Part shown: positions 34,038 through 64,000 of the stretch, in pieces | Layout of the letters: every line of letters starts with the position of its first letter | Position numbering within the stretch: position 1 is the first letter of the stretch | From: Anthoceros angustus | Lineage: Eukaryota; Plantae; Anthocerotophyta | Reading direction: 5' to 3' | Assembly: GCA_010909165.1 (NCBI GenBank) | Contig: MU008166.1 | Coordinates: forward strand, 62,001-126,000 | DNA: 64,000 nt | Translations under genes and position numbers: made by a program | The notes under the pieces: model-generated | The model's input: only the letters and a program-made list of their open reading frames with translations | What the model was told of the DNA's origin: nothing | Databases searched by the model: none

Positions 34038-34419
34038 CAACCCACCATCAGCTGTCAGTGCTGAGAGCCTGTGGGTCTACAGTTCATGCGTCAACCGCCA
34101 CGACTGCTCATTGGACCATAGAAACGCAGATTCAACTTGCCATGCTCGAACTTGGAGATCTCCCGTGCTGCGCAAGGAACTTTAAACATTTTTGACCTGT
34201 ACGTGTAGATTATTCCACACGGTGTCACTGTACAGCGAGCATCAGATTACGGTGACTTTATAAGAGCGAGAATGAAAATGTATGTGGTTGTCGTTGCACA
34301 TAAGCTTTCCACCAAAAGCGACCATCACCATGTGACATTGAATAAAAGACTGGTCATAGACTACATATACATACATGATCGTGATTTGCGTTGCAGAATG
34401 ATATCAGCAGGACTTGCCG

Positions 34420-39576: not shown

Positions 39577-42395
39577 ATGGATCTAAATCTGTGTACTAGT
39601 GTAGATGAACTACCTCCTGATGTGCCATTTGTTGTACAGTTGCCGAAGGGTGGCACTTTCAAAAGCAGCGACCTCCATTGGGTTCTATCAAGTGAGAAGC
39701 ACTCACGGTGGACACAAGGTCACGAGAAGACCATGCGAATTGCTCATATCCCGTTTAACAGAGTAGAAGACTTTGTGGTAGGAATGGCATCTGATGCAGA
39801 GCATGCTACCAACTTCTAAAAGAAGGACTCTAAAGGGCCCAATAGTTTACCTCGTCCCAATACTCCTACAGTCCACACAGCCCTTACATACACTAGGTCT
39901 GGTCTTCTTATTGTTGAATGTGGTAGTGTCTCTTCTTGTGCGTAAAATCCTTTTGCATCAAGATCTTGACTCATGGCTCTTCTCACAGATTCTGGTGTTC
40001 CTACGGCCCTGAGGACTTCGGGCAAACAGACCTGACTAGGCCATCCATGGCAGAGACATCCAAGTGCAAAGTTTTGAGAGGGGAAAGTGTGAAACATGGG
40101 TGCCAAGCGAACTTCCGAGTGAAGCAGTTACTATTATGGCCAAAAGTGGCAAAGATTGGGCTTTTCGAAGACAAACATCTCGACATGGCAGGTATCCTTT
40201 GTCATGGAGTTTCTTACCAGGGCATGGCTCGAGATGTTCGCCGTCGCCGATGAGAAAAAGATTGGGTTAGACACTGCCTTTACTGTAACATTTCCATAGA
40301 TGAGATCATGCGTCGGCATACAAAGGCTTTGTATGCCAAAGTTACAAACCAAGCAGGGCCTCATCAAAAGATTAGGGATGACTTCTTGCAACGGTACGAT
40401 GTAATCAACATTGCCAGAAATGTGGTCATAGGTGATAGGAAACTTCACCCTGATGATTCAACTTCAGTTTCTTTTTGGATTAGGCAGAATGCTTCCATGG
40501 TGTTCTATCAATCCACCGAGGAGCAACCCTTTGCCTTAGGTATCCAAACTTCTTTCATGCTGGAATCTATGATCAAGTATGGGAATTGCAGTGTTTTGGC
40601 TTTGGATGCAACCTTCGGCATGAACAAGTACAAATACCACTTGTTCACCATCATGGCCTTCGATCAGCACTTAAACGGTGTGCACATGGCATGGGCTATC
40701 ACGTAAGGCAACAATTGAAACATTGGTGGCATGGTTGTCGACTACGTCCGGGTTGAGCAGCATGATTCTACTTGGACACCGAGCAGCTTCCTTGTGGACG
40801 ACTGCCAAGCAGAAATCTCTACTATTCAACAAGTCTAGACTCGTAACATGCCCATCTTGCTGTGTTTGTGGCACGTGCGAAAGGCATGGAGGAAAAATCT
40901 ATTGAAGAAGGTAAGGTCGAGATAGATCTCGATTTGGGTGAACTTGGTGAGATCATGTATGTCAATGGGTTTTCCACTGCAGATATTTGGCTACGCAGGA
41001 TGTTGGACTTGTTCTATGCGTTGGGCGAAAAGGCAAATTGCGTTTGTTAAATACTTCAAGGAACAATGGGACCATAAGTATGTGCCATGGGACCTTTAAG
41101 TTCATGCACTTGCCTCGCGCCTCCTCTCGCTCTAATCGAATTGCTTGTTATTTTGGAATAGTGATGTGGCTCGCCATGCGAGGATGCCACATGTCGAGAA
41201 TACCACTCTAAGCCTTCCACGCTGAAGCCTTCCATGATACATGAAGGAGAGAGCATGTGTTTCCAAGTCCAACAGTCGTCGAATGGATTGGCTCCACCGT
41301 GAACGTTGTTGCACGACATTTTGGTATCAACATTTCACAAAGGAAGGTGGTTATACTGCAACAAGAAGCAAGAGATGTTAGAGGAGACAAGACTTGCAGT
41401 GCTGAAGGTATTCCGATTAGTTCACTCTCTGTTAAATCTCTAAGCTGCTTGTTATTTTGGAATAGTGATGTGGCTCGCCATGCGAGGATCTTTGCCACAT
41501 CTTTGGGCGGCTCCACTTCCACTGTTGAAGCCTTCCACAGATACATGAAGGAGAGAGCATGTGTTTCCAAGTCCAGTTTAACAGGCCGTCGAATGGATTG
41601 TTGCTCCACCACTTGTGAGCGTTGTTGCACGACATTTTGGTATCAACATTTCACAAAGGAAGGTGGTTATACTCGCAACAAGAAGCAAGAGATGTTAGAG
41701 GAGACAGCACTTGCAGGTGCTGAAGGTATTCGATTAGTTGATCATATTGCCACTCACGAACATGTGCACCTTGCTTGTCCACTAGCTCGCCTGGAAAATG
41801 GTACATCATAGACCATGCTTTTTCACCGTGGGCTACATGTACGTGCCCCATGGGTCTCAAGGCCTTCATCTGCAAGCATGTTATTCGTATGCAGCAACTT
41901 CTTGGTGTGCAGAAAGATGGCTCTGTTAGATCTCGGGAAAGTTCTCGGACAAATGGAGCATATGATACAACCTTGCTAGAGACAACAAACCTGGCTCTGT
42001 CCTTCTTGTTACAAGACCAAAACAACCCACATATTGTTCTTCCAGATAGCCCATTGGTTGACCCTGTGCCCAAATCAAGGTTTGAAGCTACAAGAGAAAT
42101 ACAGTTGAGCACAATTGTTGCAGGATGCAAGGAGATCTTAGATGCTGCTTATGAGCACAAAGAGTTGGCTTTTGATGTTGCTGCTATTGTGGAACAAGCC
42201 ATGCATCAAGTGAGGACGTTGGTAGCTCAACACCTTGAAAAAGGCCAGACAAGAAAGCCGTTGCAACCATTCTCAGAGAACGAAGGACCTAACACATTGA
42301 AGCGATTGAAGTCATTTGACGAGAGGCCGAGGAAAAGCAATAAAAAGACTGTATCTTGGAATCTTAAGTTACAGGGGAGTCAACAAGAGAATTGA
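39577..42395 (+). pseudogene. MULE transposase with SWIM zinc finger (At4g13970/At1g60560-like family); frameshifted in this sequence
   Basis: IAHIPFNRVEDFV, FWCSYGPEDF, GCQANFRVK, FALGIQTSFMLESMIKYGN.SVLALDATFGMNKYKY (D1), FLVDDCQAE (D2), LCLWHVRKAW (CxxH), STVEAFHRYMK (E) and WATCTCPMGLKAFICKHVI (SWIM). Confidence 0.85.
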
Positions 42396-43729: not shown

Positions 43730-44182
43730 ATGGCTAATATTTTTCAAAATGCATGTGGGTTTCTGGAATACCCTTTCTTGAATACACCTGATTGTGATGG
43801 TATTGATATTGATCCACTCTTCATTTTTACTCACCATAGCGAGGTGTTGACTGTAACTGAAGCATCAATTGCTAATGCTGGAGAGCTATTTCCACAAAAA
43901 AACGCTAAACTTACTACACTAGAGAAGGCAACTCTAGCCGAACCACTATTATGGTCTCTAGCTCATTGCATCCCAGATCCACCTTCTACAGTAAAAAATA
44001 TGGAAGACTGTGAACTTTGTCTTCAAAAAGCACTAACTCTAACAATGTCATCATGTCTTTTTAGCAAAGGAGGATTTGTCATATTGAAGGATGGTTGTTT
44101 TATCAACTATTTGGATTATAACTTTCTAACTTTTGGGGCTCCTACATTCCTTCCATTTCCATTCCAACAATTTAGTTTTTAA
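43730..44182 (+). CDS. Single-domain DUF26/Gnk2 (stress-antifungal) cysteine-rich secretory-type protein
   Basis: LWSLAHCIPD...EDCELCLQKA...SSCLFSKGGFVILKDGCFINYLDYNF mirrors the DUF26 consensus LYxLAQCxPDLxxxDCxxCLxxA...C....GGRVL..SCxLRYExYxF. An in-frame hydrophobic stretch (KILVFIFG) lies just upstream of the ATG. Confidence 0.7.
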   Translation: MANIFQNACGFLEYPFLNTPDCDGIDIDPLFIFTHHSEVLTVTEASIANAGELFPQKNAKLTTLEKATLAEPLLWSLAHCIPDPPSTVKNMEDCELCLQKALTLTMSSCLFSKGGFVILKDGCFINYLDYNFLTFGAPTFLPFPFQQFSF

Positions 44183-46702: not shown

Positions 46703-48296
46703 AGACATATCCCCTAAACCTTTCGCAAAAAGCTCTCTTCAAAGCCTCAAAGGTGATGGGGGGTGTGGAAGAGGCGAGATACTCCCGTTCGTACCACTTG
46801 GCCACCGTTCTCGCAAGACTCCATAGAACAGCTGGGCACGTTGCGCATCCCCTACCTCCTGGTTGGCAAGCGTCAACTACTCAAAACGCTCGGCAAACTC
46901 GTCAGGATCCTCGTGGCCTTTCTTTTCTCCATACAGTGGGTGTGGTTGCTTAGTGGTAATAACTACCGGAGTAGTAGTCATAACTACCGTGGTAGTACTC
47001 TCAGTGACTGCGGTAGTGGATACAACTACCACGTCTGGACTGACTTCCACACCCACAAAGTTTGACTGGACTGAAGCTGGTCGGGGCAATCGGGAACGGA
47101 GATCAAAAAACGAGTTCTGGTTGGGGTACCTGGGCCCTTGTACCTCCTCCGTAGCCGAGAGTTGGGAGTCTGGCTCGAATAGGATCCGACCCTCGATTCT
47201 AGGCTGACTCCTTGTTCCTCTTCCTCATCCAGCAGGTGTGGCCTCCCACTGCGCCCTTTTTGTGACTCTCTGCAACCTTTCTGCTGCTTGGCGTTGTCGC
47301 TTTGCCAGGGGCGTTTCCCCACAGTCAGACCCAGAGTCGCTTGTCTTCACCCGAGGCATCCATCTATCAACCTATTTATATCTAAACTCTGTACTTAGTA
47401 TTGTTAGTCCTACCTACGTCCTTGACAGCAGTTTCATACCCCGGCAACGGCGCAAAAATGTGGGGTGTAAACTTGTGTCTAGGGACACCGTGAGGTCCAC
47501 ATTCACCCTCAATGTCGTTGTAGGCCTAGGATTCTCTCCCAAGGGCATGGTTTGTGCCAAGGAACGCTAACTTCTATCGCTACTAACCTTCATCTAAGTT
47601 AGGACTTACCTGCTATCACTCCCCTTACCTATCTACTCAACTACCACTACCTTCCGACTGGTCTAACTGCCATAGGTCTTATTCCACAACCCCCGTCTCC
47701 GGGCAGCTATCGCGGTAGCTCTCACCACTACCGAGTAGTTGCTACGACTACAGGGGTGGGTCCCACACCAAACCCTAGCAACTTATTTCTGTCGCAGGGC
47801 ACCGTGGATCCCTGCCATGGATGGCTACCACTGCTCACAGATCAGACTTTATTTGCACTCCACACTCCATGCACACACTGATTCCAGGGACCAAAGTTCC
47901 TCGGATCCCTCACACCCGCTTCACACACACACCAAGGGCGCCACGCCCACACAATTCCACCAGGGAACACTGTTTCCTCTTGTGCACACTTCCACTGACA
48001 ACACCGGTTTGGATTCTCTTCGATCCACATAAATCTCCACTGTTAGTTTCTCAATTAGTTCTCCTTCTCTACTCCCCTTTCACGGTCTCACACCTCGCAT
48101 CGCGTACAGTGTTCAGTCACTCCTTCACCCAATCTTCTTCCTCTCCCTCGATTCGCTTCACCCAATCTTCTCTCTCTCTCTCTCTCTCTCGATTCGTCCC
48201 TTAGGCTTCCAACCACACTCACAAGCACTCTCTTAATTTTGGAACACAACCAATAGAAAAAAAGGGCAAGGGAAAGAAGAATTCTAGGGCATCACA
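46703..48296 (-). mobile_element. Truncated Ty3/gypsy (Athila/Tat-type) LTR retrotransposon: 5' LTR, PBS and gag 5' part
   Basis: On the minus strand the LTR runs TGTGATGCCC(48296)...CACA(47459), followed by TTTTTG(G)CGCCGTTGCCGGGG (tRNA-Asp-type PBS, 47439-47454). The gag from ATG 47359 contains KKGHEDPDEFAERFE.LTLAN...D.QRAQLF..VL and is cut off at 46703. Confidence 0.8.
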
Positions 48297-48801
48297 GCAA
48301 GCGTTACGAGCAAGCTCCAGACCCGCCCCGCGCCAATCCCTCGATTTCCTCCTCCGTTGTCAGCGGGGAGCGCTTAATCACCCTCCTTCCGCCGGTTGCG
48401 GAGCAAGCTCTCGACCACCAACACCATAAATTTTGAAGGGGGGGAATATACAAACCCCCTTCCAGGAAAAAATAACCCCTTTGACGGAAAAGGCACCATC
48501 CTCAAATTGCGGAAAATGGCTGGTTTGAGAATACAGACACCATCCGTATATACAAACCCATAGCAGAACACCAAACTGAACAGACATCCTCTACACGAAC
48601 CCCACATGACGCCGGCCGGCCGGCGCCATTGCGGATTGCAAACAAAGCAAAGCGTAACACCAAAATTTCAGAAAAGTCACATCGTGAAATTTAAAAGGTT
48701 CGGAAACATCCGGAACATGCAGGTGTTCTCATATTGGCAAAACTGGCAAAGCTAAACACCTACTCCCGCAAACTGCACAGGGAGATTTTGCTTATCAGCG
48801 T

Positions 48802-51800
48802 CTACAGTGTTCTATCGTGAGGGCTTACATGAGAGTCGACCATTTCATCCACCGCAACTGAATCTACAACAAGTGCCAAATTACGCAAGCGCTCCATCTC
48901 CTGTGCGTCAAAGCTATCATTCTCACCTAAAGCCTGCTGGTCTTCATTGATATCGTTTTGGGTGTCGCCGCTTAGGTCGCCGCCATACAAAGATCCAATG
49001 TCTGCTGTCCATCACCATAAGTTCGCCGGTTGTCGTCTTTAACCTCTTCGCACTCAATGCCACAACTTGGGCTTTCAAGCGCTCTTCACTAATACAAACC
49101 TCGCCCAGAATCGAGATGGTCCTCTCGGCGGCTCAAAAGTGAACTCGTCTCAGACGGCAAGACATCAACACTGTATGCGCTGCAATGTAACTCGCGATCT
49201 CAAGTCCGCCTATTGCAATATACGCCACACAACAACGCAGCCTAGTGTCGTAGTCCCACCGCTCGAGCATGCATCAATAACCCGCCTCCTTGGAGAATGT
49301 CCTCACGAGTTTCATCATAAGACCCAATGGTCTCTGGTATGGGCACACTACCAACTTGTCATGAGACAGGTAAACCTGTTTCTTGACGACAGTAGGGTGT
49401 CCAATAACGGATCTTCCATTGTTGAAGGTCCCGTGCATCACATTGGGCATCATGGCAGCCCTGTCCTTCGCACATCCATCTTTCACACCCCATCCAACTG
49501 TAACGTATTCCACAGTCTCAAATCCGCCTCTGTCGTTGTTCATGTTAGTCTTATCCCAGATGAATGATACTAAGCCGCCTTTGGCACACCACTTCCGCAT
49601 AGCCTCCCTTACCGTATGGGCTTCTTCAACACCATGCATGACGATAATGAAGTCGTCATTTTCCGCTTTCTCCGAAACTTTGAAACACAAAGACCCATCA
49701 TTGATAAATCCATTCGCTTGTCCATTGGCCCGATGTCAAATCCACGGGGACATCCATGACTAGAAGGGTGTATTTCCTTCCCCTCAAAAACCCACGCATG
49801 TCCGTAACGCTATGCTTTTCCACTAATCGACCTGCTTTCTCACCGACGGAACATTGAAAACATGGAGTCCTTCTTCCAAGTCCTTGTCCGCCAAAGCGCG
49901 CTGTTCATTCTCTAGGCCCTTCCAGTTATTGATCTCGAAAATAAAATGCCGGAAATCGTCGGGCAGCTTTGTCAAGACCTCCACATCCTTTAGTTGCTGC
50001 CACAACAACAACCTGTTAGAATGCATAGACTGGATCAAGCGCTACACAACTGCTATGCAGTGGATGAGGCGCCGGCCGGCCGGCGCCCCCCACGCCAGCC
50101 CACCGCGGTGGAGGGGAAGGGGGCGCCGCCGGCCGGCGCCCTCATCGCCAGCGGGAGCATGAAAGAGGAGTGGGCGCCACCGCCGGGCGCCCAAATTGAA
50201 CATGGAAAGAAGGTCCGGGAAAATGGCTTACCTTTCCAAATGCCGCTTTGAATCGCGCAAGCATTTGATCGATTGAGTCTTTGGGGATACTCGCCGAACC
50301 TCTTCAAAAGACGAGCAACCAAGGTGTTTTGCCATCGCCACTTGAATAATATGAGATTTCTTCCGAAGAGATATATCGTCATCCATTCCTTTCAGGTCAA
50401 TGAGACCTGCCAACACTTTCTCCGTAGCGGTGATAAGTATCTGCTGCCCACACTCCCCCACTGGAATCCCTTGAAATGATTTCCAAGGCTTTGCAAGCAT
50501 ATCTTTTGGCTTCACATAAACAGAGTCTATTTTGTTGGCCTCCTCGGCCACTTTCCGCTTCACCTTGCTCTTCTTGCTTGTACCTGCTATCACATGCTTC
50601 TTCTGTTCTGGCAACTCTCCTGCTTCCCACTTGGTAAAAATCTTGTCTACATTTTCCCATACCCTACCCTCTTGTTTCGCAATGCATAAAATATGGGTCC
50701 TGTTGTCAACCTTGTTCTGTTTATAAACATCATCCTCCCGTGCTTCATCATCCTCAATAAGACCCAACACCTTGTACAGGTTGAATTTCCATGTCATGGT
50801 CATCTGCACAGCATCCCGTTTCGCAATAATCAATTCATCCCTCAAATACCTCACCTGCTCTATAAAATTCATCTTCCGGCGCTTATCGGACATAGTATTA
50901 TGGTCCGTGGCGAGGACTCGCATCTCTTGTACGTTGAGACCACAGTACACATGAGCCTCCACATATTGAAACCGCTTCTTCAAGAGATATCCGCAAGATC
51001 CCGTTTCGCAATAATCAATTCATCCCTCAAATACCTCACCTGCTCTATAAAATTCATCTTCCGGCGCTTATCGGACATAGTATTATGGTCCGTGGCGAGG
51101 ACTCGCATCTCTGTACGTTGAGACCACAGTACACATGAGCCTCCACATATTGAAACCGCTTCTTGCCCGGAGAGATGTCTGCAAGATGCTTCATTGCCGC
51201 ATAAGTGTGGTTTCCTCCAAGTACTCCCATGACATATTTTTTGGCCCTGAATCTCTGCCAGTCTAGCTTTTCCATGTCATCACACTCCGCAGGATCAATC
51301 ATACATAATAAAGGCAAAACGCCTTCTTCAATCCTCCCTTTTGATATAACACGCGCCAATAATTAGCCCATGCTTCATCAACCCTGCGTATCTGTGCATC
51401 TGGTGTAAGGTATGATGCCGGTCGAAGGTTCTCTAATTTCACCAGGACTGTTTCCAATACCACTTTCTTCGCATATGCTGCTTCTCTGACCCGTGTCAGG
51501 GGGTCTTCAACCTGATAGCCTCCGCAATCCTCTCCTGATCTGTTGTAACATGAACAGTGGGAATCTCACCCACATTTTCCACCCTCTGCAGTTTGTCCCT
51601 TCCTCTTTGCTTTTGCCTTAGGAGGGTCCTCGCCGTCATTCCTTCTTCTCCCATCTCCTTCAAAAACGACACCTGCCTTCCTTTTCCCCTTCGTCCCTAC
51701 CGCCTCCCAGCCTTGGTTAGCATGAGAGGGCGCCGCCGGCGCCTCGCCTCCTCATGCGGAGCCGTGAGGGCGCCCGCCGGGCGCCCGCCGGCGCCAGTCC

Positions 51801-52150
51801 CTCTCCAACTTCCAAAACCGCGGGTCGGTCGGGCCTGACTGGCGTGGGGCGCCGGCCGGCTGGCCGGCGCCCCTCTACCTCGTCGAGCCCAGTCTGCAAC
51901 CCCCGGGGGGTTTCATAGGGCATGAAAACCCCCGCATCCATGTCCTCCTGCTGCGCATCTGAATGCTCTTCATCGAGTGTCCGAGGACATCAGGTATCGG
52001 GCCATAGTCTTCATCCTCCGGGCCAAACTCAGTACCCTCCTCGTTCTCACTGTCCTTCTCTTCCTCCTCATCCCGCACCTCGGCTCTGCGCGCTACGTGA
52101 CCTCCTGGCCGCATTTAATCGCTTGGGTGATTTCCGCACACAACGTCCTT
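48802..52150 (-). CDS. ParB/Srx-like domain fused to a beta-class N4/N6 DNA amino-methyltransferase; intron-containing, frameshifted in this sequence, 5' end uncertain
   Basis: ParB/Srx: VKLENLRP...QIRRVDEAWANYLARVISKG...LPLLCMIDP...VLGGNHTYAAMKHL...EAHVYCGL...LATDHN (GGNH at 51207-51218), followed by KMNFIEQVRYL. MTase in beta order: motif IV YTLLVMDVP-x-GF (49746-49754), SFIWDKTN, VEYVTVGW, CPYQRPLGLMMKLVRTFSK, and motif I IDACS-SG-GTTTLG (about 49245-49280). GT-AG intron 50013-50231 joins ORFs 50228-50983 and 49823-50038 exactly in phase; a second candidate intron is at 51712-51878. Confidence 0.75.
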
Positions 52151-52287
52151 ATGAATGCATTCCCCATCACAGATCCCTGCACAATGAACAACGCTCACTG
52201 TTAAAGGCCAGAGACAGGCGGAAAGCATAAAAAACGAAATAGGGTAAGGTTTGCGAATACCGATTGCTCCCACCTCAGCATTCTAAA

Positions 52288-52941
52288 TCAAAAGAAAGGT
52301 TCGCATTTCTTGATAACAAGGTTGTTGAACCTGATCTCGAAAGCTCTGTACAGCTCGGGACCGTGGGGCACCGCATCGAATTCTTGAGGCCTTGTAATGC
52401 ACAGTAACTGTGCTACTGGATCCCCATTTGACATGTCCAATGTTGCCCACACTAGCCATCCTGCCCTTGCTCGTTGATTTGGCAGTGCATCCTTGTAACC
52501 CATAATCCACAGCTTGTACAAAGGCGTCCAAAACATACTCTCGTCTTCTGGTTCAGGATCCTGAACAACCATCCAATCCTTGTCCAGGATCTTCACTGCA
52601 TCCATCTGTGCTCCAAGGCCGAATGTAAACTCTCCTCGGTCAGAGGGGATGGAATAGGAGCCACCTCTTCCCACCCTTTCCCTTTCTCCATGGCCTCCTC
52701 GATTTTGTTGTGCTTTGCCTCGCCAACCCAGCCTCGACTGAGTGCCCTCCTCATGGAAGCCCGCTCCCATGGCATGTCCTCCCAAGACAGAGGTCTTCCT
52801 CGCAAATCTCCAGATGCGCCTTCTCGCCAACGGCCTTTGCTTTCCGCCGCTGCTCCGTGACAGCTCGGGGATCCGCCCGGCCGCTCGATCCTTCTTGCTT
52901 CTTCTTCCCATCGCCATCACCTGCACTTCAATACTAGCCAC
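52288..52941 (-). CDS. Hypothetical protein upstream of the ParB-MTase gene (probable internal frameshift)
   Basis: 217-codon ORF whose C-terminal half is complex, globular-looking sequence (GEFTFGLGAQMDAVKILDKDWMVVQDPEP...WLVWATLDM...PELYRAFEIRF). No family recognised. Confidence 0.4.
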   Translation of the reverse strand: MASIEVQVMAMGRRSKKDRAAGRIPELSRSSGGKQRPLARRRIWRFARKTSVLGGHAMGAGFHEEGTQSRLGWRGKAQQNRGGHGERERVGRGGSYSIPSDRGEFTFGLGAQMDAVKILDKDWMVVQDPEPEDESMFWTPLYKLWIMGYKDALPNQRARAGWLVWATLDMSNGDPVAQLLCITRPQEFDAVPHGPELYRAFEIRFNNLVIKKCEPFF

Positions 52942-53062
52942 TTCAGAGGGCCCTTCCTTCTCTGCTAATTAGCGTCCGCAATTCTACCACAAAGACGTCA
53001 ATTCGTGCACAAAGCAGTGGAAACCTGGAAATGGAGAGAACCCTGAGAAGCTCTGAGAAGTT

Positions 53063-53317
53063 TGAAGGATCGTGTGGCAGCACATGATGGTGGAAAGAGG
53101 AGAGGAGAGGAGAGGAGGCAAGTGTAACTCTCTCTCATTGAGATGAGGCTTGGAGGGTATTTATACCCTCCAATATTCCCTAGAAGCTCCACAAGAAGCC
53201 CCTAGAAGGAGCACAAGAAGCTTCGTAATTAGCTTAAGCTAAACTAATGATACTTAACGACACCTAACTTAGACTAAGTGTATTAGTCTAAGTACATTGG
53301 GCTTTAATACCCTTACA
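53063..53317 (-). mobile_element. Solo LTR (255 bp) with perfect 5-bp target-site duplication
   Basis: TG...CA termini flanked by AAGTT (53058-53062) and AAGTT (53318-53322); TATAAATA on the minus strand at 53158-53165. Confidence 0.9.
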
Positions 53318-53892: not shown

Positions 53893-56800
53893 GGAAGACG
53901 CCCAACAAAATGCTTTGTGCCACTCACTGCATAGATGTGGGCTATGGACTTCCCTTGGGGGTTAGGAAATAAGTTGGGTTTTGTTTTTTTCGTAGGTCCG
54001 AAGTGTAAAATAAGGCGGAAAAGGAGGAATAAGCACGGACGGCACTCGGACCGGTTCGGAGTGCACTGACCGGAGTAGGTAACGGACCTTGCCACTACGA
54101 AGAACCTCGGACCGCCGCACGTATCGGATAAGTCCGGACCCCACTCCGGGTCAAAACAGGATAAGTACGCCAGGGAAAGTAACTTAGAAGTTGGTGCGTG
54201 AGTTAGACAGAGCGGCGCCACGTGGACGGCCCTGAATGGAAGACGGGCATGCAGCAGCAGACCGAGCTGCGCAAGAGGTGTATATTCACGCCCGCTGCAT
54301 CGCGATGCCAGAAGGCTGCAGGGTAGGCGGAAGCGTAAGGCGAGAGTAAGCCATGCAGGCTCCTGACAGTTACGGACAGCAAAGAGCCACCCCTCCGCGC
54401 GACGGTTACTTCCGACGGCGAGAGGCAAGGCGGAGGTCATTCTCCCAACTCCGATCTTCGCCGCTCGCCGACACCCTCTCGCTGTCTTTTGATCGCCTGC
54501 ACCTTCCGCACTCGCTGAGGAAGCAATTGACGCCGCGCCAAGGAGCGGACGATCATGGGAGCCTCACACTCCAACGGGATGTAAGGAGCGGAAGATGGGA
54601 CCCAAGAAAGCGGGCGGAGGTCCGGGCCATGGAACTTGGTGGAGCGCAACATTGTCACCCGCGCTATCCTGACTTCGGGCCGTGGGCCGGAGGAGGCGGG
54701 GAGTTGGTCGAGGAGTGGCACTGGACGCTTTCCAGTCAGTTCGACATTTGACAAGTGTCACCCTAGTCCGGAGTACGCTGAAGATGTTGGCCAGCCAACA
54801 AGGAGGTTCGTGGAGGTCCCGAGGCGTGTACAACCGCCCAATGGAAGAAATTGGGGCGAGTCCTAACCCCTCAAGGCCGAGGGAAGATAGAGGCGGCAAA
54901 GGCCGCCCATCGCCGAACGCAACGAACAACCAACGGCCGGTTGATGCCTGAGTTGCTGCAGTGAGGGGGCAAAGGCCGTGATAATTGTCCATCGAACATG
55001 CTCACCAAGGTAGATCACCTGGTGACAATCCGGTGTTCCCGCATGCGCCGCAGAGAGGAAGGCGGCGATCGGAAGGATCATCTTCGCCAGATCAATCGTG
55101 AAGCTCACAAGCCGAGGTGTGAGAAGCCTCCTCCGCCGCGCTATCGCTGCTCTAATTCATGTGGGGCACGCGAACCTCAAGGAGGGAGAAGAGGAGCGCC
55201 AGAGGAAGGGACCGCCGCCCACCGAGGCGTAAGGAAGAACCCAGAGGTGGAAGCCTGTCCCGAGTAAGAGAGCGCGGAGGAAGACGATCGGGAGGGAATC
55301 CTGCATTCCATACGCTTGAGCGGACTCCCTCGCCACCAAGGGAAGTGTGGAGGACATCCCCATCCCCAAGGAGGCGGAAGACGCCCAACAAAATGCTTTG
55401 TGCCACTCACGCATAGATGTGGGCTATGGACTTCCCTTGGGGGTTAGGAAATAAGTTGGGTTTTGTTTTTTCAGAGGTCCGTGTAAAATAAGGCGAAAAG
55501 GAGGAATAAGCACGGACGGCACTCGGACCGCCGCCCAAGGAGGCGGAAGACGCCCAACAAAATGCTTTGTGCCACTCACGCATAGATGTGGGCTATGGAC
55601 TTCCCTTGGGGGTTAGGAAATAAGTTGGGTTTTGTTTTTTCAGAGGTCAAGTGTAAAATAAGGCGAAGGAGGAATAAGCACGACGCACGGACGGTTCGGA
55701 GTGCACTCCGGACTCCGGAGTAGGTAACGGACCTTGAGCCCACTCGAGGACCTCCTGACCACGCACCGAGTCGGATAAGTCCGGACCCCACCCGGTCAAA
55801 ACAGGATAAGTACGCCAGGAAAGTAACTTAGAAGTTGGTCGTGAGTTAGACAGCGGCGCCACGTGGACGGCCCGAATGGAAGACGGCATGCAGCGACTGT
55901 AGCATTGCCGTGGGCCGCAGGCAGATATTCACGCCCGCATCGCGCATGAGGCGTGCAGTAGGCGGAAGCGTAAGGCGAGAGTAAGCCATGCAGCCCTCGA
56001 TAGTTACGGACAAAGAAGAGCCACCCCTCCGCGCGATTGCCACCGGCGAGGCAAGGCGAGGTCATTCTCCCAAGTAACTTCGCGATCTTCGCCGCTCGCC
56101 GACACCCGGCGTTGTCTTTTGATCGCCTGCACCTTCAGCACTCGACAGGAGGAAGCAATTGACGCCGCGCCAAGGAGCGGACGATCATGAGCCTCACACT
56201 CCAACAGGGATGTAAGGAGGAAGATGGGACCCAAGAAAGCGGGCGGAGGTCATTCTTCCAAACAACTTCGCCGATTCTCGCGCCTCGACACCCGGCCTCT
56301 GGCGTTGTCTTTTGATCGCCCCAGCATCCTTAGGCAGCCTCGACTTGGCGGAGGAAGCAATTGACGCCGCGCCAAGGAGCGGAAGATGGTGCCACCCGCC
56401 AACGGGATGTAAGGAGCGGAAGATGGGACCCAAGAAAGCGGAGGCGGGCGTAGCGGCGCTTGGTGGAGCGCAACATTGTCACCGCGCTATCCGGACTTCG
56501 GGCCGTGGGCCGGAGGAGGCGGGGAGTTGGTCGAGGAGTGGCACTGGACGCTTCCAGTCAGTTCGACATTTGATGGTCACCCTAGTCCGGAGTACGCTGA
56601 AGATGTTGGCAGCAGCCAACAAGGAGGTTCGTGGAGGTCCCGAGGCGTGTACAACCGCCCAATGGAGGAAATTGGGGCGAGTCCTAACCCCTCAAGGCCG
56701 AGGGAAGATAGAGGCGGCAAAGGCCGCCCATCGAAGCTGTGGACGCAACGAACAACCAACGCCGGTTGATGTCTGGAGTTGCCGACAGAGTGCGAGCAAA

Positions 56801-59800
56801 GGCCGTGATAATTGTCCATCGAACATGCTCACCAAGGTAGATCACCTTGGTGACACACTGGTGTTCCCGCATGCGCCGCAGAGGAAGGCGGCGATCGGGA
56901 AGGATCATCTTCGCCAGATCAATCGTGAAGCTCAAGCCGAGGTGTGAGAAGCCTCCGCCGACGCTATCGCTCTTAATTCATGTGGGCACGCGAACCTCCC
57001 AAGGAGGGAAGAGAGACCCCAAGGGACCGCCCCCACCGAGGCGTAAGGAAGAACCTAGAGGTGGAAGCCCGTCCCGAGCAAGAGAGCGGGAGGAAGACGA
57101 TCGGGAGGGAATCCTGCATTCCATACGCTTGAGCGGACTCCCTCGCCACCAAGGGAAGTGTGGAGGACATCCGCTTCCTCCTCCGTGCCCCACCGAGCAA
57201 AGGCAAGCAGGAGGCGGCCATGGGAGCCGGCCGCCCGACAGCACCGGCCACGACGGCACTGATGAGCCCCGACTGGACCCGAAGAGGCGGAAGATGGTGC
57301 CACCCGCCAACGCAGACTGACGGCGCCTGGTGCCTCGCCAACGGAGTGGCAAGAAGTCAAGAGGCGTGAGAAGGAAAGGGACGCCGCCCAAGGAGCGGGA
57401 GGCCACGCAGCCCCACCCGAGCCGGCCCTGCCTCCGACGGGAGAGGCAAGAGGGTCCCTCAACCCCTCACCCCTCCGAGCCCTGTGGAGAAAGAGGGCGA
57501 ACAAGGAATTGGCCAAGAGGGCCAAAGAAGGTGAGGCTCCTGACTGTGGACCTAAGGGTCTGATTAGGTCCGAGAGCCCACCGACTCGCCCGGATCATGG
57601 TATGGAGGTCCTCGGATCGAGATGCCCGCCCACAACGGACTTGGGGGCCTCACTGGCGCGTGGAAGAGACACGGGTCCTGCCACCATGGACGATGCCTGG
57701 GGTCTCGCGGCCGAGAAGACCTGTGGAGGTGGAAGCCAAGGAGGCGATGGTGCCCTCCAGAGCAGATGGAGGCGCCCAGAGGCGAGGAGGAAGGCAAGCC
57801 TCGGCCGCATCGAGGAGGGAAGCGCCGGAGGCGAAGGGAAGTCCGTCCATTCGACAGATCGACTAAGTTTCTTCAGGAGCAGGTCGGGTGTGGAGGCCCA
57901 AGCACGGGCCGAGGATCTCGCCAACTAAGGAGGAGGCGCAGCAGAGGCGAGAGGCTCGCGACCGGCCGCCCAACATGACGCCGAGGCTCACCAAGGCCAT
58001 GAAGCGGAAGCCACCAAGGTCGACCGGATCACTATCGACGATCGAACCGGTGGAGGGAGACGGTAGCCGCGCCAACCTCAAGGCCGAGCAAAGCGGCTGA
58101 GCAAGCACGGCCGAGCCGTGAGGAGGCGCTGGAGGTCAAGACCGGGAGATCGGGGACCTCAGCAGGAGGTAGAAGGGCGCGCAGGAGCCGGAGGACAAGA
58201 AGGATTTTGAGCCGCAACTCCAAGACGGAAAGCAGGGGTTCTCAACGAGAGAATCCAAGACTTCGAGGAGATAGAGCCTCACGCTTGAAGACGGAGGAGA
58301 ATAGGCGACTGCAAGGAGTTTGACGCGAGGCCGCAGCAGGAGGTGGAAGCCCGCCCGTCCGAGCAAGAGAGCGCGGAGGAAGACGATCGGGAGGGAATCC
58401 TGCATTCCATACGCTTGAGCGGACTCCCTCGCCACCAAGGGAAGTGTGGAGGACATCCCCGCTTCCTCCTCCTGGTGCCCCACCGAGCAAGCAGGAGGCG
58501 GCTCAGATGGAGCCGCCCGGCCCGACAGCCACCCACGACGGCACTGATGAGCCCCGACGACTGGGGTCAGAAGAGGCGGAAGATGGTGCCACCCGCCAAC
58601 GCAACACCTGACGGCGCCTGCGCCCTGCCCCCGCCAACGGAGTGGCAAGAAGTCAAGAGGCGTGAGAAGGCGGAAAGGGACGCCGCCCAAGGAGCGGAGG
58701 CCACCGGCACACCCGAGCCGGGTCCTGCCTCCGACGGGAGAGGCAAGAGGGTCAGCCTCAACCCCTCACCCCTCCGAGCCCTGTGGAGAAAGAGGCGAAC
58801 AAGGAATTGGCCAAGAGGGCCAAAGAAGGTGAGGCTCCTGACTCAGACTGTGGACCTAAGGGTCCCGATTAGGTCCGGAGAGCCAGCCCGGACTCGCCTC
58901 CCGATCAGGGTATGGAGGTCCTCGGATCGAGATGCCCGCCCACAACGGACTTCTGGGGCCTCACTGGCGCGTGGAAGAGACACGGCGGTCCACCCATGGA
59001 TCAGATGCTCGGGGTCTCGCGGCCGAGAAGACCTGTGGAGGTGGAAGCCACAAGGAGGCGATGGTGCTCCTCCAGAGCAGATGGAGGCGCCCAGAGGCGA
59101 GGAGGAAGGAAGCCTCGGCCGCATCGAGGAGGGAAGCGCCGGAGGCGAGGGAAGTCCGTCCATTCGACAGATCGACTAAGTTTCTTCACCGGGTGAGCAC
59201 AAGGCATGGAGGCCCAAGCACGGCCGAGGATCTCGCCAACGGCGAGGGAGGCGCAGCAGAGGCGAGAGGGCTCTGACCGGCTACCCAACGTATCGAGGCT
59301 CACCAAGGCGCGGGGAAGCGGAAGCCACAAAGGTCGACCGGATCACTATCGACGGAACCGGTGGAGGGAGACGGCTGGGCAGCTGCCAACCTCAAGGCCG
59401 AGCAGCAGAAGGAGCAAGCACGGCCGAGCCGTGAGGAGGCGCTGAGGTCGCACCCGGGAGATCGGGGACCCTGTGGTGCAGGAGGTAGAAGGGCGCAGGA
59501 GCCGGAGGACAAGAAGGATTTTGAGCCGCAACTCCAAGACGACGGAAAGCAGCAGGGGTTCTCAACGAGAATCCAAGACTTCGAGCGGAGATAGAGCGCC
59601 CAGCCCGCTTGAAGACGGAGGAGAATAGGCGACGGCAAGGAGTTTGACGCGAGGTCAGCAGGAGGTGGAGGAAGCCGTGAGCCTGACGGGATACCGCCCG
59701 CCCGGAGAAGGAAGAGCGACCTCCGGAAAGGATAAACGGAGGGAAGAAAGCACTGGAGGAGAAGCACGCCCGTCCCACATGTGAAGTGAGGGGAGCTCAC

Positions 59801-62397
59801 CCATGGCCCGCAACCGCAGAGCCGGAACAACGACGGAGGAGGAGAACGTCGAGCAGCAGCGAAGGCTGCAGGAGGTGACGGAGGCCGCCTTGACGGCATC
59901 AAGGGAGTCCGCCCGCCTACAGTTGGTAAGCTTGGCCACGGAGACGGGCCAGCAGGCCGGACAACATGCCCAGCTGCCGGAGCACCTCTGGAGGAGGGAG
60001 TACCGGGTGCTCCGGGCTCATGTGGAGGAGGCGATTCAACAAGTCGATTCCGACTTCGCCTATTACCACGCAGAGCTCCTCAAGGCTTTGAGGTCCCGCG
60101 CCACCCCAGTGGAGGGCGACTGCAAGGGCTCAAGGAGGAGCAAGGGAGGAAGGACCCGGGACAGCACACACGGGGACCCTAGGAGCGCTGCTTGATGAGA
60201 AGCAGCGAGGGAGAGCAAGGGAGGAGCCGGAGGAAGGGTCACTACACCGGAGGTAAGCACTGCACCCCGCACGGAAGGAAGGGAGGAGGACCCGGGAGGC
60301 TGGAAGGGCGCAACCGCATTCGAACCAAGGAGGGCTCTGGATGAGCCCGTGATCACCCGTGAGGAGGCGAATCCAGAGTTGCGGACTTTGTCCGGACTGA
60401 GGAAAGGCCGGCTCTCAAGTCCGCCTCAAGGAAGTCCGGACTTAGAGATCCAGATTTAGTGACGAGACGACCCCGAGGTCCGACTGTGGGAAGGGTTGGG
60501 TCCAAGACCGACCCTGAGGCAAGTCCGACCCCGAGGTCCGAACTCCGTAAAAGGAGGCCGGACAGGGGACCGGACCCCAGGGGAAGACCGACCTAGAGGT
60601 CCGGACCGAGTCGACGGGATACCGCCCGCCCGAGAAGGAAGTAGCGACCTCCGGAAAGGATAAACGGAGGGAAGAAAGCACGAGGAGAAGCAACCGCCGT
60701 CCCACATGTGAAGTGAGGGGAGCTCACCCATGGCTGAACCGCAAGAGCCGAACAACGGAGGAGGAGAACGCCGAGCAGCCAAGGCCGCAGGAGGTGACGG
60801 AGGCCGCCTTGGCATCAAGGGAGTCCGCCGCCCGCTGGTAAGCTTAGCCACGGAGCCACAGGGGACAACATGCCCACCGCCGAGCACCTCCGGAGGAGGG
60901 AGTACCGGTGCTCCGGCTCATGTGGAGGAGGCGATTCAACAAGTCGATTCCGACTTGCCTACTACCACGCAGAGCTCCTCAAGGCTCTGAGGTCCCGCGC
61001 CACCCCAGGCGTGGAGGGCGACTGCAAGGGCTCAAGGAGGAGCAAGGAGGAAGGACCCGGGACAGCAGCCCACGGGACCCTAGGAGCGCCTGCTTGACGA
61101 CAGAAGCAGGAGGTGGAGGAGAGCCGGAGGAGCCGGAGAAGGGTCACTACACCGAGGTAAGCACTGCACTCGCACGGAAGGAAGGGAGGAGGACCCGGGA
61201 GGCCGTGGAAGGGGCGCAACCGCATTCGGGAACCAAGGAGGGCTCTGGATGAGCCCGTGATCACCCGTGAGGAGGCGTACAGTGAGTGGTTCGACTTTGT
61301 CCGGACTGAGGAAAGGCCGGCTCAAGTCCGGCCTCAAGGAAGTCCGACTTAGAGATCCAGATTTAGTGACGGACCGACTCGAGGTCCTGACCTGTGGGAA
61401 GGGTTGGGTCCGTAAGACCGGACCCCAGAGGCAAGTCCGGACCCCGAGGTCCGAACTCCAGAAAGAAGGCCGGACTCAGGGGACCGGACCCCAGAGGGAA
61501 GACCGGACCTAGAGGTCCGGACCCCGGAGTCGAGACGGGGTCCTGAGGTCCCGACTCAGGGAGTGGGGAGAGCCACCAATCACCCAGAGATCACTTGAGG
61601 GCCCAGGGGCCCGCCAGAGATAAGAGAGGAGGGGAGGAGGACTTAGCAGATCGCCACCGCCGCCACGGCGCACCGGCTGCACTGGGAGAGGAAGGGGTCT
61701 CCGCGATCATCCGATTGCGCCGCAATGCCGTGTCGCGGGCAAAGAAGGAATAGGGCCATCCCACCACCGACGCCAAGATAGGAGGAATAGGAGAATAGTA
61801 GGCGCCGATTAAGGCACCGAGCTGGCCTCACCTAATAGAGGTGTAATAAAGGCGCCGACCGCATAGTATAAGAGGGCCGAGGTGCCCGAGTAAATCATCT
61901 TCTTGGTGTTGATGCTGCTCGCGCACTGCGCCTTCTTGCTAACGTGAGTCCCGAGTCATCGAAAGGTGCACGATGCCCGAGAGATCGATCAAGGTCCCGT
62001 GACGACCCCAACGGTAGTGGTGTGGTGGAAGAGCGATCGGGACCCTTGTTCGTCTGTGAGCGCCCGGGGCCGAATCCGACCGAACGTGAGCCGGAGGAAC
62101 TCCGGAGGCGGCAGAGTCTGACGGAGAGACCCAAGAGCGAGGAGGTCCGGATGCACCACTGCTTTTCCCAAGGTTGATGAGGGTAGTGAGAGTGGTGAGA
62201 GGAACGACTAGAGGAACGTGACGAGCGAAGATACGGACGCCGAACGGATCCTTAAACGCTTGGCCACACCGGCCCGTCGGACGCTACGGTAGTTAGCAAA
62301 ATGACGGATGTGTGTTGAGGCCGAACATAAAGTGAGGTGAGAATCGATTGAACGCTGCAAACGGAGCCTATCATTCTTTGGGAGCGGACTTTACTAC
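53893..62397. mobile_element. GC-rich, internally duplicated repeat block, probably retroelement-derived; family not established
   Basis: Sub-blocks recur in tandem (about 53893-55374 / 55375-55540 / 55541-57160; about 57080-58330 / 58340-59670; about 59690-60600 / 60615-61510), with GGACC/GGTCC-rich arrays and LTR-like ends (...CCCAACA, ...TACTACA at 62397). No RT, RNase H or integrase motif was seen. Confidence 0.5.
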
Positions 62398-62411: not shown

Positions 62412-63760
62412 TTGTGCTACCGGCCGCCAAATAAAGTCGTTACAGAACGCCATGTCACCAAGAAAGTGCTTTGCAATCGAACCGTCGCCTTGGATGCGTT
62501 ATCAGGAGCAGCCATGTCCTCATTCCCCCGTTTGATTGTGCAGGCATACACTGGGGATGGTGAGGTTCAATCCCAATATCAAAGAGAACTTCCCGAGGTG
62601 CAATGGACGAGGAGAAGAGCGGACCTGAACGCCCCACCGAAGCGGCCGCATGTTCTGCCACAGGACATCCCCAGCTCCCCACGAGGCACTACGGGCCGCC
62701 AAGGTGTGCTTACTCACTTGCATTCTCATGGAGGTTGGATTTGTGAATTTAATCATCTCGTAGAAGTCTATGGCATACCAGTAGCGATTCACCCGACACG
62801 GCCGACATCACGGCCATCGGCCTCCCCTACCATTCCGAGGTGCCTGCCACGGACACCAAGAAATCTCAACCGGTATGCCGCGCTGGAGGGATCCCCATGC
62901 AAACAACGGTGTGAGCAAGCAGCTACCGCAAGAAACCAAGCCACTCGGGCTCCGAATCGTGGGGCGACTTGTTCATCCGGTGGAGTCCGACACTCACCAT
63001 CGCACGATCGAAGAATGCGGCAATAGACTGAATGAGGCGATTTCCGAGCACTCCAAGATCGGCGACCGCCATCTTATCACCCCAAACGGTGAGTGAGACT
63101 TTGGTGTCTGAGCTACGAGTGTCCGTGCCAAAAGAGGCGAGCTGGAGTCCCAATGAGGAAATGTGAAGTGGAAAGCATCAACATTGATTTGAAGGCATGT
63201 TGCAATCGGATGTGTCTCCACAGTTGACAAAAGAAAGGTTTCGTGAACAACGGTATCGCTATTTACGGATGGGGAGGCAGGAGCAGAAACATTTTGGAAT
63301 CCTCATACAAAGCAGCAAGAGCTGGGTAACGCAAAGTTATTACTCATCTTCCGGGCCGGATCCTTTCCGGCCGCTATGCTTCGAAGAGTGTATTGCCTCG
63401 CCACCAGATATGAAGAGTTGAAGAGTAGAGTCATCGAATGCACCGTGGGATGCCATGAGGTCAATAAAACAAATAGCCTCACCATGCCTTAAGTGCAATA
63501 GCCGGATGGACAATGCTTTCCAACATGGAGAGACTTCCAAATATCGAGGTCTTCAACCTACCCGACACATACACAAAACTAGAAATTTGGGGTGAATATA
63601 GGCGGCATTGTGAACAAAGAGGTCAGTATGTGACTTACGCGGTTCTTGAAGCTATGGAAAGGGCACTTCAAAGATTCCAAAGTCCAACAGATTCTCCACT
63701 TGCTCGCTCTACCGGATTGAAAACAACTATACAAATACAATCTCAAAGGTTGATCAAGGT
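62412..63760 (+). pseudogene. Degenerate Cys-rich DNA-transposase-like gene (5' part; continues toward the right edge)
   Basis: Across frames KACCNRMCL..VDKRKVREQRYRYLRMGRQEQKHF, AGW....MERLPNIEVFNLPDTYTKLEIWGEYRRHCE and LWKGHF.....P.DS.LAR....CKQL. This resembles the N-terminal architecture of eukaryotic DNA transposases of the DUF7869-associated type. Splice donor AAG/GTAAGT at about 63760. Confidence 0.5.
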
Positions 63761-64000
63761 AAGTAACATTCTTTTCCTTATCCCATGTTTTCCAAAGATA
63801 CCGAGGGTTGACCGCGAGGCCAAACCCTCAATGGCAGTGTTATGTCTACTATGTCAATATGCCCCGCTGGATGCCGAGGTGGACGCCTGACGCCGCCCAC
63901 CATACGCCCTGCACCATATGTCCTTAGGATTATGTGTGGATGGTTCCTGGTCATGAGGGCGCCGGCCGGGCGCCTCGGGTAACCCATGCATGTGCCTATC

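Follow-up and report, generated by a model that had tools for sequence, protein, structure and literature searches.

ParB-methylase genes on eukaryotic transposons

In the brown alga Ectocarpus, the 21.5-kb element Sola1-1_Ec32, which has 282-bp inverted repeats, encodes a 1104-aa protein with ParB-like and N4C/N6A methyltransferase domains on the strand opposite the Sola1 transposase, and its authors propose that this accessory protein binds and marks its own element (Genome Biol 2025, PMC12477816). A ParB-type domain is also found in the PAG2/PAG3 proteins of Bostrychia Plavaka elements, where inverted-repeat arrays lie beside the gene and have been read by the authors as self-binding (10.1101/2025.02.11.637652). 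Among host genes, Marchantia DN4MT1 carries the motif TSPPY and is a highly expressed gene of late spermiogenesis, and ParB is not mentioned for it. The gene described here lies in a window of 64,000 nucleotides from the hornwort Anthoceros angustus (GenBank assembly GCA_010909165.1, contig MU008166.1, positions 62,001 to 126,000 of the forward strand; all window coordinates below are counted from the first letter of this stretch), and it likewise joins a ParB-like domain to a DNA amino-methyltransferase.

An earlier note on this DNA had read the gene as a bacterial- or phage-derived writer of N6-methyladenine (6mA) or N4-methylcytosine (4mC) that may mark DNA in the lineage. The analysis reported here indicates that the stretch is probably one copy of an accessory (‘cargo’) gene carried by cut-and-paste DNA transposons of a DUF7869/Sola1-like family. 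The cargo protein consists of an Srx/ParB N-domain and a ParB helix-turn-helix (HTH), fused to a beta-class amino-methyltransferase fold of phage or bacterial type. Pairing of ParB with a methylase on Sola1 is already known (PMC12477816), and the land-plant host is the new part; a literature search for the ParB-methyltransferase pair in land plants found no description. The finding brings a land-plant host to a little-studied class of accessory proteins of transposons, ParB plus DNA amino-methylase, which may bind and mark their own element. It also carries a caution for plant genome annotation, in which such genes should not be counted as host 6mA/4mC writers.

Structure of the gene

Three-frame translation and peptide mapping of the minus strand at about 51.9-49.1 kb define a single path that leads from a ParB-like domain through a linker into beta-class amino-methyltransferase motifs. 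The path is made up of 11 abutting segments, none of which has an internal stop, and comprises about 800 codons. Every ParB-like and methyltransferase motif listed in the earlier note was recovered by this procedure, and its central proposal, a fusion of ParB with an amino-methyltransferase of the beta class and PF01555 type in a gene with spliceosomal introns, is supported by the motif order, the homologues and a family-conserved intron. Features that it had left unmentioned are a second, likely intron at 51673-51878, a 185-nt tandem duplication, the nine individual frame breaks, the intron palindromes and a transposase start at 63.0-63.7 kb.

All exons and introns of the model are on the minus strand. 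Putative exon 1 (51879..51941, MDAGVF...GLDE) is an open frame running up to a GT donor, and its phase fits that of exon 2; an acidic open reading frame (ORF) upstream of it (51875-52114) may extend it, given one more bridged frame break. Putative intron 1 (51673..51878; GT at 51878-51877, AG at 51674-51673) is GC-rich and holds four GGCGCC...GGCGCC palindromes. Exon 2 (50232..51672) encodes the ParB-like N-domain, a duplicated segment of 62-63 codons and a linker with a ParB-HTH-like stretch (~50381-50503). Intron 2 (50013..50231) runs from GTAAGC to TCTAACAG, its donor G being 50231 (GAAAG|GTAAGC) and its acceptor AG 50014-50013 (TCTAACAG|G); splicing gives ...RHLER|LLLWQQLK in frame, with coordinates and junction exactly as the earlier note had claimed for a GT-AG intron joining two ORFs. 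Exon 3 (49134..50012) encodes the beta-class methyltransferase and ends with a stop at 49134-49136. An acidic ORF downstream on the same strand (48802..48990) could, after further bridged breaks, be a C-terminal tail; the relatives' tails are also acidic, and no alignment supports this uncertain assignment. The gene thus modelled contains at least one spliceosomal intron, and probably two.

The methyltransferase half

The methyltransferase motifs follow one another in the order D-V-P (49746-49754), PYQRP (49328-49342) and D-A-C-S-S-G-G-T-T (49249-49275), which is the circular permutation of the beta class. In their wider context they read LVMDVP (49746-49766), continued by RGFDIG after a one-base gap; IWDKTN (49544-49561); PYQRP, then LVRTFS; and motif I, VIDACSSGGTT (49249-49281). 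The apparent indel that had been noted after DVP is real, a CCCC run at ~49746 being one base short of DVP-RGFDIG.

A phmmer search with the ORF at 49274-49690 gave just two matches, P0001 and P0002, among 1.8 billion representative proteins (E 6e-5 and 1.3e-4), and both pass the PF01555 threshold (56.4 and 30.5 bits, where 26.7 is required). P0002 represents a family of 30 members, nearly all PF01555. In tblastn this family covers both the motif IV exon and the ORF at 49274-49690, each in its own frame, and it matches phage methyltransferase PHROGs with E down to 2.6e-14. A profile built from the window ORF and two relatives matches beta-class enzymes in the PDB, including TTHA0409 (2zie), M.RsrI, CcrM, an N4-cytosine methyltransferase and MboIIA, and in the Atlas 80 of the 100 clusters nearest to the window ORF are PF01555, the neighbours being bacterial and viral. 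To judge from these sequence comparisons, the similarity to methyltransferase motifs exceeds chance.

Motif IV departs from the usual form. Once the one-base gap is bridged it reads D-V-P-R-G-F (~49738-49754), with Arg at the Tyr/Phe position, and the gene does not fit the pattern (D/S/N)-P-P-(Y/F/W). The closest relative, the Illumina-derived contig L002, has D-L-P-R-G in an unbroken frame, and a Ginkgo model has D-I-S-Q-G-Y. The Ginkgo protein (P0031) was considered as a nearer relative, but the metagenome family proved at least as close to the window. In the more distant family every member seen reads A-D-I/V-P-Y-G-F, retaining the aromatic residue. The Tyr or Phe of motif IV normally stacks on the flipped base. 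The plant branch, as its motifs read, has lost this base-stacking residue and retained motif I, and land-plant members with Arg in motif IV may not methylate at all; the Tyr-to-Arg change in a catalytic motif calls into question whether the plant members are methylases.

The ParB half

The ParB-like stretch contains the blocks VLVKLENLRP..., PLLCMIDP..., VLGGNHTYAAMKHL, VEAHVYCGL and HNTMSDKRRK, with QIRRVDEAW at ~51390 and the GGNH of VLGGNH at 51207-51218; FIEQVRYL is present twice because of the tandem duplication. Its relationship to ParB is best seen through ORFs that sit just upstream of the methyltransferase ORF on two related contigs. In tblastn, L004:315-1676 and L003:1457-2437 match window 50282-50980 (E 4e-10 and 2e-10), and the GGNH block at 51099-51320 matches with E 3.6e-5 for L004 and 0.008 for L003.

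For the ParB-side ORF 24 relatives were gathered. An AlphaFold model of the family (P0032), built on the relatives' alignment with a predicted local distance difference test (pLDDT) score of 75.5, has as its best PDB match B. subtilis ParB/Spo0J-CDP (6sdk, E 1.2e-5), followed by Noc, M. xanthus ParB with CTPgS, Caulobacter ParB, PadC, sulfiredoxin and KorB, and these structure alignments cover both the N-domain and the HTH. With a sequence profile of the ParB family the Spo0J HTH was the only PDB match; Pfam HTH_ParB is found in 5 of 22 family members and a phage ParB PHROG in one (7.8e-5). As modelled, the family has the ParB fold (N-domain plus HTH), to which the window pieces are homologous (E 4e-10 and 3.6e-5).

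Direct signals on the window's own ParB pieces are weak (phrog_6392, E 0.028; an Atlas ParB_N lead of 0.90). A word-indexed homology search with the window's 251-aa helical piece returned nothing, its length filter leaving out full-length relatives. In a phmmer search of the ParB piece against PDB sequences the sole matches were alphaRep, artificial proteins, and were judged spurious. The CTP-binding arginine patch G-E-R-R-x-R-A is replaced by G-G-N-H-T-Y-A-A in the window and G-G-N-H-G-A-R-A in the family. The sulfiredoxin motif, G-G-C-H-R, is nearer to GGNH than is the GERR of ParB.

A conserved intron in a plant nuclear locus

The intron between the ParB and methyltransferase parts recurs across the family. 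On L003 the two coding parts are split by a 238-nt GT-AG segment, and on L005 exactly this segment is absent, so that ParB and methyltransferase are read through in a single frame. The corresponding intron of L002 measures 618 nt, and intron 2 of the window lies within one or two residues of the L003/L005 position. Because its position is common to the window, L002 and L003, the intron is regarded as an old family feature, conserved from uncharacterised, probably eukaryotic, metagenome/Logan members to plants.

Such introns bear on whether the gene entered the assembly from a bacterial or phage contaminant or through a chimeric contig. Fusions of ParB with a methylase typify phages, and in the Atlas the methyltransferase ORF has bacterial and viral neighbours; yet the GT-AG introns of the gene stand at positions that the family conserves, the gene's nearest relatives are eukaryotic transposon genes, and the same contig carries plant PPR, GRAS and nodulin-like genes. 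Within the window, a PPR-E gene of 921 aa (2051-4816, ORF 2766 nt) and a GRAS gene of 661 aa (32055-34040, ORF 1986 nt) are intact, and nodulin-like exons are present too. The check through contig flanks that the earlier note had proposed speaks against a contaminant: the window is plant nuclear DNA, and an origin by contamination or chimerism is scarcely credible.

Palindromes in and beside the element genes

The pattern GGCGCC-N(3-14)-GGCGCC occurs eight times in the window, against 0.06 expected. Three copies lie in intron 2 (50068-50087, 50122-50140 and 50173-50191), four in putative intron 1, and the eighth (63958..63974) inside the transposase region described below; a ninth, degenerate copy (CGCCGGCCGGCCGGCG) lies downstream of the gene at 48605..48627. 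On the metagenome contig L003 (1-9404) a different 14-nt palindrome, CGATACCGGTATCG, is present 21 times against 0 expected. Nineteen of the 21 fall between called ORFs, the exceptions being two copies, at 7361 and 7466, within the ORF called for the transposase N-terminus. The 21 copies include an array at 33-382 with a spacing of ~70 nt, and sets of three in the ParB/methylase intron and in the intergenic space on the 3′ side. The exact L003 14-mer was found in no other locus retrieved for comparison.

ParB proteins bind palindromic parS sites, so the most economical reading is that every element family carries sites for its own ParB. The 20-bp palindrome GGCGCCGGCCGGCCGGCGCC is thus a candidate binding site of the ParB-HTH part. 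The ParB part would bind the element's own short palindromes (GGCGCC-N-GGCGCC), in introns and beside genes, thereby directing the methyltransferase-like part to DNA of the element itself.

The GC-rich palindromes could instead be unrelated to the ParB part, for example as remnants of small hairpin repeats or a by-product of intron composition. L004 has no such palindromes at the threshold used, the 12-mer found three times in the homologous intron of L002 was picked post hoc and is only a quasi-palindrome, and binding by ParB is a prediction only. This alternative is nonetheless unlikely, as within 64 kb the GGCGCC palindromes are restricted to positions in or beside the two element genes, L003 has its different 14-mer in equivalent non-coding places including the homologous intron, the family has a ParB HTH, and the same idea has been published for red-algal Plavaka elements (10.1101/2025.02.11.637652).

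A more speculative extension, which is given rather low odds, is that in land-plant members the ParB-methylase cargo has turned into a non-methylating, self-targeting DNA clamp on element-specific palindromes, its methylase fold serving as a base-flipping reader or shield. Palindromes kept in the gene's own introns would be spliced out of the mRNA, and the methylase fold, with Arg for the base-stacking Tyr and motif I kept, would read a flipped base or shield the DNA. If so, the element would be protected or regulated by its cargo, and 6mA or 4mC would not be written.

Association with a DUF7869/Sola1-like transposase

The link to a transposon comes from the relatives and from the window itself. 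On three independent contigs (L001, L003 and L004) the methyltransferase gene stands tail-to-tail with a DUF7869 gene (E 1e-50 to 2e-50); a literature search for papers on DUF7869 found none. In the window, the start of a DUF7869/Sola1-like transposase gene was located on the plus strand at 63060..63710, where CCNRMC, ERLPNIEVFNLPDTYTKLEIW and KIPKSNRFSTC can be read; it is frame-broken and runs past the window end. The transposase N-terminal ORF of L003 (6125-7924) matches window 63522-63602 in tblastn (E 6e-6) and 63671-63706 in a second frame, and the layout CC-x-x-N-C plus ‘F-x-RIW-x-x-EFP ... C-x-x-C’ is common to the window's transposase start and the Ectocarpus Sola1-1_Ec32 transposase. 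It is likely that the window holds both genes of one element, on opposite strands.

Several observations weigh against this assignment of the gene and its domains. A Pfam search with ten separate gene pieces gave no match at E up to 1, and an AlphaFold model of the window's 251-aa helical piece (pLDDT 70.8) gave no Foldseek match in the PDB. The DUF7869 catalytic ORFs found nothing in the window by tblastn, the catalytic domain lying beyond 64000, and the equation of DUF7869 with Sola1, drawn from motif layout and the Ectocarpus paper, is provisional. Inverted repeats of at least 60 nt are absent from 44-64 kb, the element's right end being outside the window, and terminal inverted repeats and a 4-bp target-site duplication are not seen, the element running off the window. 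The window's two element genes are divergent, whereas those of L003 and L004 are convergent, and they are separated by ~10 kb that includes GC-rich tandem repeats at 54-62 kb; the ParB-methyltransferase and transposase genes could come from two different elements.

The intervening block at 54200-61600 spans ~7 kb with 58-64% GC, is strongly purine-skewed and consists of nested direct repeats spaced ~1.82, 1.3 and 0.93 kb, including a 169-nt tandem (55365-55682) and a 33-nt tandem (61418-61525). The block gave no Pfam match and contains 0 element palindromes; it may be a satellite, or an insertion nested between the two transposon genes. Elsewhere in the window, two overlapping plus-strand ORFs at 41257-42395, the second with a weak SWIM zinc-finger match, are probably a frame-broken MULE-type transposase, and an ORF at 43730-44182 resembles Stress-antifung (Gnk2/DUF26) at 23.2 bits, below the cut-off of 25.

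Expression and copy number

With the gene locus as query no sequencing run came up; the GRAS gene as query led to an RNA run (X1) and a DNA run (X2) of the same organism, together with runs of two relatives (organisms B and C). The reads compared are assembler contigs over 47400-53300, which show presence and not absence. In X1 depth is zero across the whole ParB-methyltransferase gene and the neighbouring GRAS gene is fully present. The transcripts for which the earlier note had asked were therefore not seen in this one RNA run of A. angustus, which does not cover sperm tissue. The X2 contigs are patchy; their depth is 28-160 in the methyltransferase part and 3-19 in ParB and the linker, and they carry several indel variants. 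Depth and variant contigs together suggest many related copies, contig depth being a poor measure of copy number. DNA of organism C gave short diverged patches only and no ortholog. For organism B, run X3 contains an RNA contig of 3134 nt in which two diverged stretches correspond to the linker (window 50592-50791), showing that a family member is transcribed in this relative.

Window 53113-53300 is a very high-copy repeat, with a contig depth of ~4800 in the DNA run, and is also found in RNA contigs; a 24-nt palindrome, TTGGAGGGTATTTATACCCTCCAA, lies inside it at 53150-53173.

These data also bear on the suggestion that the gene is an active 6mA or 4mC writer kept (domesticated) by the plant lineage. 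Such a role could draw on the retention of the S-adenosylmethionine-binding motif I, PYQRP and IWDKTN and on the freedom of all 11 segments from stops. It is set against an Arg in motif IV where DN4MT1 has TSPPY, the zero RNA depth in X1 beside a fully represented GRAS gene, a depth that suggests many copies, the short diverged patches in organism C in place of an ortholog, a transposase start nearby and a tandem duplication inside the ParB domain itself. A host writer is accordingly very improbable. The comparison with Marchantia DN4MT1 or rotifer N4CMT as lineage-level writers, which the earlier note had drawn, does not hold up: the family rides on DUF7869/Sola1-like transposons, Arg replaces the catalytic aromatic residue in both the window and L002, this copy is broken as assembled, and the ParB-methylase pairing has already been published on a transposon (PMC12477816).

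Frame breaks and duplication

As assembled, the cargo gene is damaged. The tandem duplication in the ParB domain (50813..51185, minus strand), found by repeat search, consists of units at 50998-51185 and 50813-50997 with a spacing of 184-185 nt and 96-100% identity; with two one-base gaps filled the units are 63 and 62 codons long and in frame. The frameshifts suspected in the earlier note are present and number nine, at 51499, 51338, 51111 and 50983 in exon 2 and at 49826, 49746, 49708, 49280 and 49222 in exon 3. At all but 49280 the frames overlap by exactly one base, so that one added base restores the frame, and most of these eight lie at short base runs (CCCCC, AAAA/GGG, CCCC, TTT). At 51111 the missing A is directly visible in the sister copy of the duplication.

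The breaks are either real decay or the result of poor polishing of multi-copy sequence, and the two are rated about even. A uniform indel rate (nine per ~2.3 kb of coding sequence) predicts ~18 in the 4.7 kb of the PPR and GRAS genes, where none was observed, and the breaks are therefore specific to this repeat. Poor polishing is favoured because the breaks show a one-sided ‘-1’ pattern and because there is no nonsense substitution in ~800 codons; a real lesion is favoured because the duplication junction is diverged. The strongest form of the decay reading, that the copy is a truly dead relic in which all nine breaks and the duplication are real mutations, is placed only slightly below an even chance. 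The intact PPR (2766 nt) and GRAS (1986 nt) ORFs show that single-copy genes are accurately assembled, nine breaks in ~2.3 kb far exceed the rate in such genes, the one RNA run has zero depth over the gene, and the diverged duplication junction is no simple stutter. A relic of this kind fits poorly, however, with eight of nine breaks that need exactly one added base, mostly at runs such as CCCC, CCCCC, TTT or AAAA/GGG, and with stop-free segments throughout, as neutral decay would also be expected to give several nonsense substitutions.

Comparison with known systems

Phage and plasmid fusions of ParB with N6_N4 methyltransferases (PF02195 plus PF01555) have the same domain pair and the same beta-class motif order as the window gene. 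They differ in having no introns and no eukaryotic transposon, a canonical DPPY motif, and GERR where the window has GGNH. The methyltransferases MpDN4MT1a/b of Marchantia and N4CMT of rotifers resemble the window gene as bacterial-type amino-methyltransferases in a eukaryotic nuclear genome, but MpDN4MT1 combines TSPPY with strong expression, in contrast to the D-V-P-R motif, the nearby transposase and the lack of RNA in X1 that mark the window gene. In the Plavaka elements, PAG2/PAG3 have ParB fused to a 2-oxoglutarate (2OG) oxygenase, the methylase accompanies a SET domain in another protein, and the elements belong to another superfamily.

The metagenome/Logan contigs L001, L003, L004 and L005 have the domain order and the ParB/methyltransferase intron of the window gene, and L003 and the window alike have palindromes of their own in non-coding parts. 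Identity to the window gene is only ~25-30%, these relatives keep the aromatic residue in A-D-I/V-P-Y-G-F, and their genes are convergent with the transposase where those of the window are divergent. The distant family also has an extra N-terminal domain of ~200 aa (in the same frame ahead of ParB within L005 1-3117; L003 436-1092) for which no window counterpart was found; an upstream ORF on the same strand (52288-52941) was considered and is not that domain.

With Ectocarpus Sola1-1_Ec32 the window shares a ParB-methyltransferase gene and, on the opposite strand, at least the start of a Sola1-like transposase. It differs in its host, a land plant and not a brown alga, in its path of ~800 codons, in the motif D-V-P-R-G and in being damaged as assembled. 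The A. angustus gene most probably belongs with the accessory genes, encoding ParB-methyltransferase proteins, that Sola1-type transposons carry.

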